DNA of 64,000 nt from Pavona decussata (lineage: Eukaryota), in NCBI GenBank assembly GCA_977016875.1, contig CDRNST010000195.1, positions 2,790,001 to 2,854,000 of the forward strand. The letters are read 5' to 3'. The notes under the pieces were generated by a model, which saw nothing but the letters and a program-made list of their open reading frames with translations, ran no database searches and was not told where the DNA came from. A program made the position numbers and the translations under genes. Shown here piece by piece: positions 9,299-60,389 of the stretch (position 1 is the stretch's first letter; each line of letters begins with the position of its first letter).

Positions 9299-9354
9299 TA
9301 AACTAAGAACACATAATCCTCTCAGGTTGCGACCTTACTGGTCCTAGCAATGTT
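9299..9354. repeat. ~56-bp direct repeat (second copy 11286-11341) bracketing the Ngaro fragment
   Basis: taaactaagaacacataatcctctcaggttgcgacctta(c/a)tggtcctagcaatgtt occurs twice, with 1 mismatch. Confidence 0.95.
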
Positions 9355-11285
9355 CAATGCCTAAGGCTACCTCGTTAGCCAGATATTCGTCAACCACCTT
9401 CGCCAGTTGGCTAGTCTAAGCCTGTGGGTGGACTGAACCCCAGCTTGAACCATGGCGGATGCCCTGAATGACAAAGTCAACCTGTTGTTGGTCTGAATGG
9501 GAAGTCAATTCTCTGCAAAATTTATCCTCGTTCAATGGGCTAACGGAAGAAACTGGCGGAAATGTAGAACTAGCTGAGAAAGAGGAAAACAAACAAAGGC
9601 ACTAAAAATAAAACCACTCAAAAAAAAGGGGTGCAACTAGGTCTAAAAGGCATTTAATACACGAAATAACAAGTAAACTATTATGTTCACGTCTACCCAA
9701 TCAACTATTATCCAAGGCAAACACTGATTTGCCATCAGTTTATTTTTCACCACATCAAACCAAAGTCAGAAAACCGCATGTACGATCATTACAACATGTC
9801 ATGCTCAACAATTAAACAAAATGAAGAGGGAGTCCACTAAAGGAGTTTTGAACGAGAGCTGGACGAACTTGACGACGGCGAGGCAGACCTGCGTTTCCAA
9901 TCCTGTTTGGACACATTATCTGTACTGGAAGAACAGGCGCGGGCTCGATGGGGACCATTACACTGGCTGCAGCGATGGGCAAAGCAACAAAACATCAACT
10001 TGTCGGAACAGCGACCTCTGTTCCACGACCTGCAGATAATCTCCAACGAAGCTGCTCCCGAAGGTTCAGGCAAGTCGATGAAAGCACTGTCGATGCCGCC
10101 AGGTACCGACCTCCCAGCAGCACAAAAATTATAAAGCTGGACTTCATCGTCGACAAATCAACGATCTTCGCTGCCGCTGCATGCTCGCGAAAAGCTTTGT
10201 CGTACGTCAGCCACACATGCCCACTGAACTGGCGGTATGTGCGAAGAATGAGCAGTTAAATCCTTCCAGCAGTGAGGAAAGTAGGAAGTGAGAATGAGGC
10301 TAAAAATAGCAAACGCTTCGCATCACGAACCGATATCCTCGACCCCGCGATGATTCTTTTTGGCGGAGGAAGTGAGGGCCAAACACCCATCCAACATGAC
10401 CTGTGACTCCGGCTCAGTGTGTGCAATGTTGGTCGAAAGCAAGTCGCTCAGATCAATGAATTTACCACTGACAATCTGACTTACATTCTTGGCCGGTACC
10501 AGGGAAAAGCTAGGGCCAACAACGAAAGGTTGTTGCAGGAGAGGGCCAGACGACAAGCTGGTAGAGGATGGGATACTAACATCGTAAGGAATCATAGCAA
10601 GGCCCGGGAAACTAAGAGAAATGACTGAGCTTGTATCCGCAGAGTGCGGTTCCACAAAGGTAGGAACAAAGGAAGGCACAATAAAATTATTCCTACCTTG
10701 GGACGCTGGAGGAGACGAGGCTGATTGGGACGAAGGAAAACCAACACCGAAGAAATAAAAGACGCTGCATGAGCGCCCAAATCCATCTGTTGAGCGGGAA
10801 CGCCCCTTGAAACACGCCACGACGATGAATTCACAGGTTCAGGCATCGAAACCGGCATGCTAGCGACATCCGCTGACACGAAGGATTTCTCAGCAGCCAA
10901 TGCAACTTTTACGGCACTAACAACAGTGGCAAGAAAGGCTGGATCAGGCACATTCGCTGCAGGCAAAGATGAAGCTGTCGCTGAACTGGTTGGGGCCGTA
11001 AATGAGACCACAGTAGGACTAGAAGAAGCTTCAGTGCTTGCAGACACGGAAGCGAGCGACAGATCAGTAAAAAGATCGGCGGAGCGACTATTTTTCATCT
11101 GGTGCAAAGACATGACAGCAGAAAGGTTCAACCAACAAGGAGTTTGACAATATGGCAGGCAAAAATGACCTATCTAGCAGGCCAGCAAGCAAGCAAATGC
11201 AATGCGAACCATGGGGCTCCCCCCAGCAGAGAAATCAAAGGCATTGACCTGACTTTAACTTTGCCTAAATTACATTTAGCCACAT
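9355..11285 (-). mobile_element. Ngaro/DIRS tyrosine-recombinase retroelement, 5' part only (gag plus start of pol)
   Basis: Gag-like motifs PFVVGPSFSLVPAKNVSQIVSGKFIDLSDLL, WLTYDKAFREHAAA and the CCCH/CCHC knuckle CRSWNRGRC..HRCSQCNGPHRA. The pol start (VVDEYLANEVALG) is cut at about 9355. Frameshifted. Confidence 0.85.
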
Positions 11286-11461
11286 TAAACTAAGAACACA
11301 TAATCCTCTCAGGTTGCGACCTTAATGGTCCTAGCAATGTTTAGCGTTCCGGATAACACAGCTTTCTGCATCTTCCTGAAGACTTCGGAGCTCATACTTA
11401 CCACAAGCTTGCGCATCGTCACCTCCAACTTCCAAGACCATCCCCAAGGGTATTATTATCT

Positions 11462-56781: not shown

Positions 56782-58330
56782 CTAGAGATGAAGAGGGATC
56801 TCTGTGGGATGAGGATTCATGTAGGCCGGTGCCAGTTGTTTGAAAGTCTGCAATTTTAACCGAGAAAGGGCATCAGCAAGAACATTGTGCACACCCGCAA
56901 TAGGCTTGGCTTTAAAACAAATATTCTTTTCCAAACAAACAAGCACCAGGCTACGAACTAAAAACATCAAGTTCATATCCCTACAAGACTGCTTGTTGAT
57001 GACATGAACCAATGCCTCATTATCAGTAAAGAAAAGGATGCGTTGATTCTGCATTTCATGGCCCCATAAATGCAGACTCAAAACAATTGGGTGAAGTTCT
57101 AAAAAGGCAATGTTTAGGTGACACCAGCTATCCTGCCACCGACCGTAACACCAATGTCTACCAAAAACAGCACCATAACCCAAGGCACCAGAGGCATCAG
57201 TATACAGTTCTAGCTGATGAGAATTGGTCCACTGATCAGTCAGAAAAAATGAGCGACCATTAAAACTTGAGAGAAACGATTGCCAAACCAACAAATCCTG
57301 TTTGACTTGGCTAGAAAGGCGAATGTGGTTTTCGTACTTCAATGGTCAAATCAATTAACCTGCGCAAGAAAGCCCGACCTGGGACAACAACAGTACAGGC
57401 AAAATTGAGCAATCCTGTAAATGATTGAATTTCCTGAAGAGTGACCTTACGCCGACGAAGAAAAGCCGAGAGAAGTTCACGACATTTATCCAGCTTTCTT
57501 GGGGTAAACGGGCCTCCGTCAGAACTGTGTCCAGCTCAATACCCGCAAAAGCCAGTGTTGTCGATGGGCCAACAGTTTTTTCTGGTGCCATGGGTATACC
57601 CAAATAACTACAGAACATTAAAAAATTATCCAACTGATGTTGGCATGAGGCTTGAGAGGGAGAAACTATCAAGAAATCATCTAGCAAATGCAAAATATAA
57701 GGAATATGCAACTTCTTCTGGGCAGTCCATTCAAGAGCAGTCGAAAACATCTCAAAAGTTCTACAGGAACTTGAACAGCCCGTAGGCATGCACCTATCAT
57801 AATAATAAAGGCCTTGCCAGGATATTCCCAAAAGATCGTAGTCTTCAGGGCTAATAGGAATTAAACGAAAGGCATTCTTAACATCAGTTTTGGCTAAAAA
57901 ACAATTTTGATCCACAGACTTAATCAAGCGAATGGCATCCTCCACGGTGGCATTTGAAACACCAGTGTAATCAAAAGAAATTCCATCATTCAAAGAGGAG
58001 CCTCTTGGATAAGAAAGATGGTGAATTAGACGAAACTCACCCTCAATGTTCTTGGGAACTAAACCGAGGGGTAATACTCGAAAGACTGGGAAAGGGGGGG
58101 ATGAAAAAGGACCAGCAAGCCTATGGGCGTCAAGCTCCTTAGAAAGCTTAGCATTTACAGCCGCCGGATTTTGCAGAGCTGAAAGAAGGTTAGGGGCCTC
58201 TTGAGAACACGAGGTCCATCAAAGTGCAAAGGAAAACCAAATGTAAAACCAGAGGCTAGTAACTGAACAATTGAATGGTCATACCCAGTAAGAAAAGGAA
58301 GCATACGCCTAATGCTTACAGGGGTTGGTA
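56782..58330 (-). pseudogene. Ngaro RT and RNase H (frameshifted)
   Basis: AKTDVKNAFR, GCSSSC, HLLDDFL, AGIELDT; RNase H YTDASG, LELHPI, TDNEAL, NVLADALSR. Confidence 0.93.
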
Positions 58331-59577
58331 ACTGTTGAGCTGGACTGGGTTGAATGGGAGGTAGGTTTTGTTGCACCTCTGTTCTGTGATTGAATCCCAC
58401 CGCTTTTGGCACGAAAATTACATGTGAAAGCACGGTGGAAGCCCTCACATTTAAAACAATCATGCTTAAAGGAGCAGCCCATAAAGTCACCACCCCTATG
58501 GTAAGAAAAACAAAATCCCTTTGGAACACGAAGATTATGCCCAAGCTTTCCAGTGTTTACAGGGGTTTGTGGCTTCTTTGCACTGACCGGGCTTTGTGAG
58601 CAGAGCCAAAGCTCCCAATGAATGGTCCCCCAAGGAAGAGAAGTAGCAGGGGTCTGTCGCCAAAAAGGGAAATTTTCATCATAAAAACGCCAGTTCAGAC
58701 CCCTGGCAGCAAGGTCTTGGATGGTGGATCCATACTTCATAAGACCAGGACCATCACTTGGAAAGCGGCTAGTATAAACCCCTGCAAACACATGGAAAGC
58801 CTGAACCCAACTATCAAAAGAAACGGTTTTCTTTGGCTTAGTAACTGGCTCCAGAGCCAAAGAGGGGGCAGAGCCATCACCAGGGTTAATGGTGAGCTGG
58901 TATTTGCCCTCAGAAAATTGGTTTGCCAAGAGCAGACCAAAGTCAACAAACTCATTCTGCCAGATTTTGGTTTTTAATTTTAACGGCACTCGTGTATCGA
59001 CTGGCAAATGAATAGAAGTAAAGACCTCCTTTGGTTGCACTGCCCCTGATGAAGGGACCTCGCCTGCTAATTAGGAGTGGACTGACTGTACCACTTGGGC
59101 AACCGGGTCCACAACTGATGCATTGCCCGCCGGAACTGGCTGTCTGGCTGAGTCCACTGCTAATGAATTGACCACAGGGACCTCTGTGGTCAACTGCTGA
59201 ATAGATGTTGTCCCAGCCATACCAGGGAAGGAAGCAGAGGCAGCAGATGCCGCTTGAGGCCCCTGAACAGTAGGCGAAGAAGACGTGGGTTGTAACTGTT
59301 TGGTCACCTCAGCTGCTACCTGTTGAACCAACTGCGCAAACAGGGCAGGAGGAAATGCGGGCACAGCAGGCTCGATGGCAGGCACAGGAGGGGCTGGTTC
59401 TACAAGCTGGACGGCATGTACAGGAGGGGCTGGTTTGACAGGCTGGGCGGCAGGCACAGGAGGGACTATTGCACTGTTATGTGCTGCCGGGCGCCTCCTC
59501 CGAGGAGGTGAAGCCACCAGAGACTCCAAGGCCTGACTGGATGGTCGTTTGGATCGTGCAGACCGGTGGGAAGGCAT
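58309..59577 (-). pseudogene. Ngaro gag-like ORF (one internal stop)
   Basis: KIWQNEFVDFGLLL, WVQAF, WRFYDENF and knuckle CFSYHRG..CSFKHDCFKCEGFH. The ATG at 59577 directly follows a tttttcag acceptor. Confidence 0.88.
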
Positions 59578-60389
59578 CTGAAAAACAAAACCACACAGTA
59601 CAATTAGGGTCCAAATGTACCTACAGGAAACCTGCCAATACCCAGCAATAATGCAGCATTTTAGAAAAATGAAATCTCGAGAGGATGAAATAAAATCACA
59701 AAATGAAATCACGAAATCTCGAGAGGACGGACTATAAGGTTAAAATGTAAAAAGGTGACAAAAAACTTAGCATTCAGATATCATTGCCCCCTTAAAGTAT
59801 CAAATAAGCGCACAGCCTGGAAACATCATAAGTATTTGGAATTTTTTTAATTGGCTTACAACATTTAATTCAGGCTACATTAAGGATTTTCCTACAAACT
59901 CGAGTGGAAGCCATAGTCTACGTACCTAATCATTCTATTTCTAATTGAAGGATTCCAGGAAAGAAAACAGTTAAGTGTAGTTTACAAAATTACAAGTTAT
60001 TGTTTAGATCCAGTCCGAGAATGCATGAACTTAAAGCTGAAACTAACTTCAATTTGTTGGTGCCTGAAACTAAAGAAACAACAGGCTGCAATAAGTCTTT
60101 ACTTGGACCTTAAAAATAACTAATTTAGCGCTTAACAAAAGAAAAGAGAGAAGCTGGAGGTGGGCTTTGTAGATGAAACATGAAGAATGAATGCCACTTT
60201 AAGACTCGCCTGGGTAATAAGATAATCAAGTCAATAACTTAAATTGCTTATCAGAAAATAAAGACAACTGGACACCTGGAACTCCGTTGCCATCCACTTG
60301 AATCCTACATGCATAGCACTTTGGCTAAACCATGCGTCCTGTTTAGTATCTTGACTCTAGAGGTTGTTCACTTCTGTTCTCCTTTCACT

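Follow-up and report, generated by a model that had tools for sequence, protein, structure and literature searches.

Three truncated copies of Ngaro retroelements, which carry a tyrosine recombinase (YR), were found in a 64,000-nucleotide stretch of the Pavona decussata genome (GenBank assembly GCA_977016875.1, contig CDRNST010000195.1, positions 2,790,001 to 2,854,000), hereafter called the window. Each copy keeps one natural terminus, is cut at its other end and lies between the two copies of a long direct repeat, and all three repeats are duplicated target DNA, not element sequence. Complete copies of the same families show no target duplication, whereas truncated copies flanked by duplications of variable length recur across the genome. 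The truncated copies appear to be products of a second, non-canonical insertion route of Ngaro elements, which resembles that of long interspersed nuclear elements (LINEs). In the reading that we prefer, to which we give a probability of about 0.5, the natural end of a linear Ngaro replication intermediate was attached to a nicked target, or was primed from it, and normal integration by the recombinase did not take place. The window is a transposon-rich part of a 602-Mb genome, and the genome comparisons were run copy by copy. C and L numbers are our working names for contigs and loci.

Target duplications around three truncated copies

The three copies, elements 1 to 3 (Table 1), are the only Ngaro copies detected in the whole window by tblastn with Ngaro proteins, and all lie on the minus strand. 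A preliminary description of the window had reported a repeat pair around each of them. All three pairs were found at or near the positions it gave, and the repeats have, as it claimed, no sequence relation to one another. At element 1, three bases next to the left copy (9355–9357, CAA) are either filler or two more target bases. The repeat cores of element 2 are identical at 36 of 41 positions and contain a 31-bp stretch with one mismatch. When two empty paralogs are aligned, the right copy reaches about 51469, and the duplication then measures about 47–51 bp; the repeat described earlier is real, but the length of about 35 bp given for it is not. The origin of the adjoining bases 51465–51468 (AAAA) is uncertain. 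At element 3, positions 54207–54257 and 59595–59645 match at 50 of 51 bases and are followed by 16 more matching bases, before which the left copy has 19 extra bases placed between two CAG triplets. A self-comparison of the whole window showed few other local two-copy direct repeats, all of them internal to elements.

A site holding a single copy of the repeat was found for each element, which bears out the earlier suggestion that the repeats belong to the flank. A paralog of the element 1 flanks (L013 on C89) has both flanks contiguous around a single 56-mer. Two empty paralogs of the element 2 site (L080 and L081, on C144 and C47) carry one repeat copy each, and their flank alignments overlap by 47 bp. 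The repeat unit of element 3 occurs at only two places in the genome, both flanking the element. The preliminary description had proposed looking for empty alleles with one repeat, and such an allele of element 3 was found in the public run X16: a contig joins position 54287 to 59657 and skips 5369 bp, which is exactly element 3 (5302 bp) plus one 67-bp repeat copy. The depth of this contig is 35, compared with 48 for the flank. X16 consists of assembled contigs and may come from the assembled individual, and it supports the existence of an empty allele, not a population frequency. The empty allele follows the 86-bp left version, and therefore the right copy has lost 19 bp between the two CAG triplets.

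The repeats could also have been part of the elements, as A or B repeats, 5′ untranslated region or tandem or circularly permuted copies, a possibility that the preliminary description had raised against its own reading. The repeat units were absent from all other copies of the elements, and the empty sites hold one unit, so this explanation was rejected. The only repeat that did prove internal to its own repeat family was an unrelated one at 13162–14302, which shows that the comparison can detect this situation.

The repeat at 13162–14302 is a unit of about 984 bp, of which little more than one tandem or permuted copy is present; units of 66–80 bp lie at 13162, 13241 and 14237. Its minus-strand open reading frames (ORFs) resembled a Penelope-like endonuclease, and Pfam support was absent. 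Its other genomic copies join the two halves through a single 66-mer. The 66-bp repeat around 13324–14236 was considered as the long duplication of a Penelope-like fragment and was rejected, as Pfam support was lacking and the 66-mer is internal to the repeat family.

The ends of the three copies were located by comparison with their relatives, and the result agrees with the early assignment of a kept 5′ end to elements 1 and 2 and of a kept 3′ end (repeat B2, with A1 lacking) to element 3. Eight other family-1 copies extend beyond 9358 with conserved sequence, and therefore element 1 is truncated there; its retained 5′ terminus, ...CCACAT at 11285, is the common family-1 terminus. Element 2 ends in the same ...CCACAT at 51464, as does its closest relative, and breaks off within the reverse transcriptase (RT) reading frame. 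The 22-nt 5′-terminal motif CCTAAATTACATTTAGCCACAT had 435 genome matches at no more than two mismatches, compared with 0 for a reversed control. The 3′ terminus of element 3, at about 54290–54293, is the point at which more than 30 other copies start. Beyond 59598 its relatives continue into a 5′ leader, as seen in the comparison of copies and in loose contig ends of the public run, and element 3 is cut on its 5′ side 17 nt ahead of its gag ATG.

The truncation points were also considered as splice sites and rejected. In element 3 the acceptor-like sequence before the gag ATG falls 17 nt inside the cut, and the GT beside the cut of element 1 is not conserved among copies. The motif CCTAAATTACATTTAGCCACAT (11264–11285 and 51443–51464 in the window) is common to many otherwise diverged Ngaro families. 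A stretch of about 36 nt, located 45 nt from the 5′ terminus (about 11241), is missing in element 1 and present in every other family-1 copy.

Intact copies, further cases and element structure

Complete and solo copies of the same families were free of target duplications, in agreement with the premise of the preliminary description that normal insertion of YR elements leaves no long duplication. Both canonical ends are present in the solo A-B units compared, six from family 3 and eight from family 1. The model of a circle integrated by the recombinase likewise involves no target duplication (PMC3266345). The internal junction, or core, of family 1 reads ...CCACAT-TTAAA-GTCATC... (about TTTAAA), and the core of family 3 is about TTTAT, adjoining GTCTTTC. 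A LINE of the window served as a control of another kind. It lies on the minus strand at 31609–33657, is 5′-truncated and L1-like with a zf-RVT domain, ends in a poly(A) tail (a poly-T run at 31609–31623) and has a target duplication of about 10 bp relative to an empty paralog at 18.7 kb of the window. Its flanks (31279–31608 and 33658–34598) are about 95% identical to 18088–19914, a segmental duplication inside the window that serves as the empty site. The window also contains a BEL/Pao-type long terminal repeat (LTR) retrotransposon on the minus strand at 20500–27200 (DUF1759 gag, RVT_1, integrase zinc domain and DUF5641) and a piggyBac-type transposase fragment at 15465–16043.

The insertion type had been presented as one recurring within these 50 kb. 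It is not local, as six more cases were found on other contigs (Table 1). The 3′ terminal pattern of family 3 had only 32 matches in the genome, and therefore the census of family-3 3′ ends is nearly complete; by our tally of 3′ ends, the truncated type with a duplication makes up about 5 of about 28 independent family-3 insertions. The 5′-retained cases come from a partial census of 60 sampled termini. Twenty more 5′ termini, taken with 1 kb of inside sequence, gave no additional case. Copies on C35, C126, C155 and C46 look truncated or interrupted, and a search of 400 bp from the break showed no duplication; we leave these copies unclassified. A 117-bp "duplication" in L075, with similar ones in L093, L109 and L113, was rejected because it consists of the element's own B1 and B2 repeats and not of target DNA.

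The nine duplications measure 7, 7, 7, 16, about 47–51, 55–56, 56, 56 and 86 bp. The three of 55–56 bp (9299–9354; L084:187–242; L040:1413–1472) span two families and both the 5′- and the 3′-retained class, and the 56-mer of L084 occurs only twice in the genome. The clusters at 55–56 bp and at 7 bp hint at preferred staggers; for the former a rough estimate gave p of about 0.05.

It is most improbable that these structures arose by secondary rearrangement, in which full insertions were later partly deleted and the flank was duplicated separately, or by assembly errors. The region is indeed rich in transposons and contains a segmental duplication. However, the same architecture is present at nine independent loci, and a deletion does not leave an element with duplicated sequence directly at both of its ends. 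A few base differences separate the two copies of each duplication, which shows that they are not reads that were collapsed or duplicated, and the filled and empty alleles of element 3 differ by exactly the element and one repeat.

The predicted architecture of these elements is that of Ngaro, and the elements themselves are ordinary. The minus-strand gene order of element 3 is gag, RT, RNase H and tyrosine recombinase. The assignments of the putative RNase H and recombinase are consistent but weak, because the matches fall below the Pfam cut-off. The only solved structures matched by the recombinase were those of the catalytic C-terminus of Cre (E = 0.06), and its ORF contains the motifs GHSFRIG and LGRW...Y (HxxR and GRW...Y). 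Ngaro is told from DIRS1 and PAT elements by the absence of a methyltransferase domain. Between the recombinase and B1 of element 3 no ORF of at least 80 aa was listed except one overlapping the repeats; no search dedicated to methyltransferases was made. A full-length family-1 copy on C130 has the order A1...B1-A2-B2, with A1 and A2 88.7% identical over 168 nt and B1 and B2 83.6% identical over 67 nt, and solo A-B units are numerous in both family 1 and family 3.

Several other repeats lie in or beside these elements. Tandem units of 68–70 bp with a conserved GCCGCCCATGCAAACTGA core occupy 55165–55490 and 55575–55834, between the recombinase and B1 of element 3. Element 2 contains a nested AT-rich high-copy repeat of about 265 bp (50377–50643), which matches more than 12 other loci at 79–85% identity. 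Another high-copy repeat (51567–51700) starts about 50 bp beyond the right copy of the element 2 duplication; it is 91–96% identical to more than 25 loci and looks like a young family similar to short interspersed nuclear elements or miniature inverted-repeat transposable elements. Several of the family-3 loci L035, L036, L039, L040 and L059–L061 pass from internal sequence through a single B repeat into the flank, without an A2-B2 tail; these copies could reflect recombination between B1 and B2 or a distinct structural variant.

Table 1. Features of the three Ngaro copies in the window and truncated copies with target duplications found elsewhere in the genome
Feature	Position	Strand	Description
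Element 1, left duplication copy	9299–9354	none	56 bp; 55/56 identical to right copy
Element 1, body	9358–11285	minus	A1 repeat and gag region of family-1 Ngaro; cut before pol
Element 1, right duplication copy	11286–11341	none	56 bp
Element 2, left duplication copy	49783–49829	none	Core 49789–49829; small deletion relative to empty paralogs
Element 2, body	49830–51464	minus	A1, gag and first ~30 RT codons; related Ngaro family
Element 2, right duplication copy	51469–51515	none	Core 51475–51515
Element 3, left duplication copy	54207–54292	none	86 bp, including 19-bp stretch absent from right copy
Element 3, body	54293–59594	minus	Family-3 Ngaro without A1 and 5′ leader; 5302 bp
Element 3, B2	54294–54486	minus	
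Element 3, A2	54487–54749	minus	
Element 3, B1	54750–54956	minus	
Element 3, hairpin/tandem array	about 55165–55490	minus	
Element 3, putative YR	55847–56605	minus	Phage_integrase, E = 9e-4, below Pfam cut-off
Element 3, putative RNase H	56782–57342	minus	RT_RNaseH, E = 0.002, below Pfam cut-off
Element 3, predicted RT	57355–57993	minus	RVT_1, E = 1e-11
Element 3, predicted gag	58309–59578	minus	gag similarity to elements 1 and 2
Element 3, right duplication copy	59595–59661	none	67 bp
C66			240-bp fragment, family-3 3′ end kept; duplication 55–56 bp
L048			63-bp fragment, family-3 3′ end kept; 7-bp duplication TGTAAAT
L060			About 200-bp fragment, family-3 3′ end kept; duplication 7 bp exact or 8/9
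L062			90-bp fragment, family-3 3′ end kept; 7-bp duplication GTCATTT
L084 (C4)			179-bp fragment, 5′ end kept; 56-bp duplication, 55/56 identical
L116 (C85)			244-bp fragment, 5′ end kept; 16-bp duplication

Origin of the truncated copies

The junctions were inspected at both ends. At the truncated junction, element and target share a 4-nt microhomology (ACAG) in element 3 and a 2-nt one (TG) in C66. In element 1, by our reading, 11 of 15 positions at the end of the duplicated target agree with the element sequence just past the cut, at an offset of 3–4 nt. The target ends in TTT at the canonical junctions of element 3, C66 and L062, so that pairing with the AAA at the end of the sense strand is possible. 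L048 and L060 keep the whole terminal motif (TTTAT/TTTAC), and the adjoining target shows no resemblance to it. In the four 5′-retained cases ...CCACAT is followed by T, A, A and G; at the other termini T follows in 42 of 59, in 17 of these as TTAA. The difference between the duplication-bearing and the other termini is suggestive only (Fisher p = 0.09).

On the normal route, a closed circle would be joined to the target at a short core, leaving no duplication. We propose that a linear intermediate was instead used end-on. Its natural terminus, which in the sense strand reads ...GACATAAA at the 3′ end of family 3 and ATGTGG... at the 5′ end of families 1 and 2, would be joined to or primed from a chromosomal 3′-OH at a nick or staggered break. 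With RNA as the template, a 3′-OH pairing with or abutting the RNA 3′ end may give 3′-retained copies such as element 3. The 3′ end of a single-stranded complementary DNA (cDNA), or internal priming on RNA with run-off at the 5′ end, may give 5′-retained copies such as elements 1 and 2. DNA synthesis would proceed inward for 0.06–5.3 kb and then stop, and the free end would be rejoined to the chromosome, sometimes through a microhomology of no more than 4 nt and once near a longer imperfect match. If the second strand was broken 7–86 bp away, this stretch of target would be copied on both sides. What we infer in this scheme is the kind of template, the polymerase involved and where the nick came from.

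The data lean to capture of, or priming on, the end of a linear cDNA or RNA because the duplications range over 7–86 bp, microhomology is present and the targets are often unlike the core. Of the two mechanisms offered in the preliminary description, capture of cDNA at a break is therefore provisionally favoured, and a one-ended exchange by the recombinase is favoured less. DIRS-1 makes mainly linear single-stranded cDNA according to PMC7192593, and variable and long duplications are described as a hallmark of target-primed insertion in PMC9977147.

The one-ended exchange, which we regard as unlikely, is nevertheless a serious rival, because some targets are core-like and 7 bp is a typical recombinase stagger. 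It assumes that a cDNA, circular or carrying the B/A junction, undergoes a correct exchange at this junction with a core-like target, after which the second exchange would fail. Repair or replication synthesis would then switch back tens of bases behind the crossover, leaving a truncated element and a duplicated target. In every case one terminus is exact to the nucleotide at the point where complete copies end, as this mechanism expects, and the canonical junctions of element 1 (TAAAC compared with TTAAAC) and of element 3 and C66 (CATTT and CTTTT compared with TTTAT) have core-like targets. Tyrosine-recombinase cuts are usually 6–8 bp apart, a spacing that the three duplications of about 7 bp would match. 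However, the targets of L048, L060, L084 and L116 are unlike the core, and there the element's own copy of the motif is whole. Target duplication is not a known product of tyrosine recombinases, duplications rather than deletions are not predicted, and there is no account of why either element end can be kept.

Several points weigh against end-on use of a linear intermediate. The identity of the template and synthesis by the element's own RT are our inference. A Pfam search of the element 3 proteins found no nicking endonuclease domain, and a tyrosine recombinase leaves a 3′-phosphotyrosine, not a 3′-OH. Plain target-primed reverse transcription on RNA fits element 3 only; elements 1 and 2 require either a cDNA template or priming inside the RNA. 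In the classical Ngaro model the RNA ends and the termini of the element DNA are assumed not to coincide. The three 55–56-bp and three 7-bp duplications hint at defined staggers, which a protein complex may set and which purely opportunistic capture does not predict, and the targets at the canonical junctions of elements 1 and 3 resemble the core (TAAAC and CATTT), which also fits a recombinase.

A stronger version of the end-on proposal, which we put forward tentatively, is that of a regular, recombinase-independent pathway. In it a chromosomal 3′-OH would prime on either natural end of a linear single-stranded RNA or cDNA, a protein complex would set preferred staggers of about 7 and about 56 bp, and about one fifth of a family's insertions would arise in this way. 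The polymorphism of one insertion would mean that such a pathway is still active.

Relation to known systems and significance

The elements share with canonical Ngaro and DIRS elements the order of gag, RT, RNase H and tyrosine recombinase, the A1...B1-A2-B2 repeats, defined termini, a short core and the lack of duplication in complete and solo copies. They differ from the canonical model (PMC3266345) in that the three window copies and six others keep one terminus and have 7–86 bp of duplicated target.

With target-primed non-LTR elements (LINEs and Penelope-like elements, including endonuclease-independent and internally primed insertions) the truncated copies share one exact end, truncation of the other, variable and long duplications and microhomology at the far junction. 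The full signature of an exact 3′ end, 5′ truncation, a variable duplication and microhomology at the 5′ junction is present in element 3, C66, L048, L060 and L062. Unlike non-LTR elements, the Ngaro copies lack a poly(A) or LINE-type tail at all canonical 3′ junctions, no APE, RLE or GIY-YIG endonuclease domain was found in element 3, and the kept end is not always the 3′ end, as elements 1 and 2, L084 and L116 keep the 5′ end. The same observations bear on mobilisation in trans, in which a LINE or Penelope-like endonuclease would nick the target and its RT would copy Ngaro RNA, as for processed pseudogenes. The 5′ truncation, variable duplications and junction microhomology correspond to the classical non-LTR signature, as given in PMC9977147. 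This explanation fits poorly, because the fragments, which end exactly at the Ngaro terminus, lack a tail and about half of the cases keep the 5′ end, and we consider it improbable. Recognition of a 3′ end cannot produce copies in which only the 5′ end remains, and the window LINE whose empty site could be compared carries a poly(A) tail, and its duplication is no longer than about 10 bp.

A third comparison is with the cDNA of retroviruses and LTR retrotransposons, for which integrase-independent or one-ended integration, capture at breaks and aberrant insertions with large host duplications are known. The likeness lies in a linear cDNA with one correct end joined by host repair, in the truncations and in the atypical duplications or deletions. 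The difference is that in those elements the integrase is of the DDE type and the linear cDNA is double-stranded. A literature search of incomplete coverage found no report of truncated YR retroelements flanked by duplications, or of one-ended or captured cDNA insertions of recombinase-type retroelements. The novelty lies in the type of insertion product, not in the elements.

The process may be recent, because one insertion has an empty allele in the public run. For annotation, long direct repeats around a YR fragment should not be read as LTRs or as parts of the element, and a duplication around a truncated YR copy is no reason to reclassify the copy as LINE-like. Integration of DIRS and Ngaro elements is still largely a model in which a recombinase integrates a circle at a 3-bp core without duplication. 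The off-pathway products described here suggest that the same families have a further route into DNA, one with LINE-like scars. These products probably mark the physical ends of the linear intermediates, which makes the model testable.

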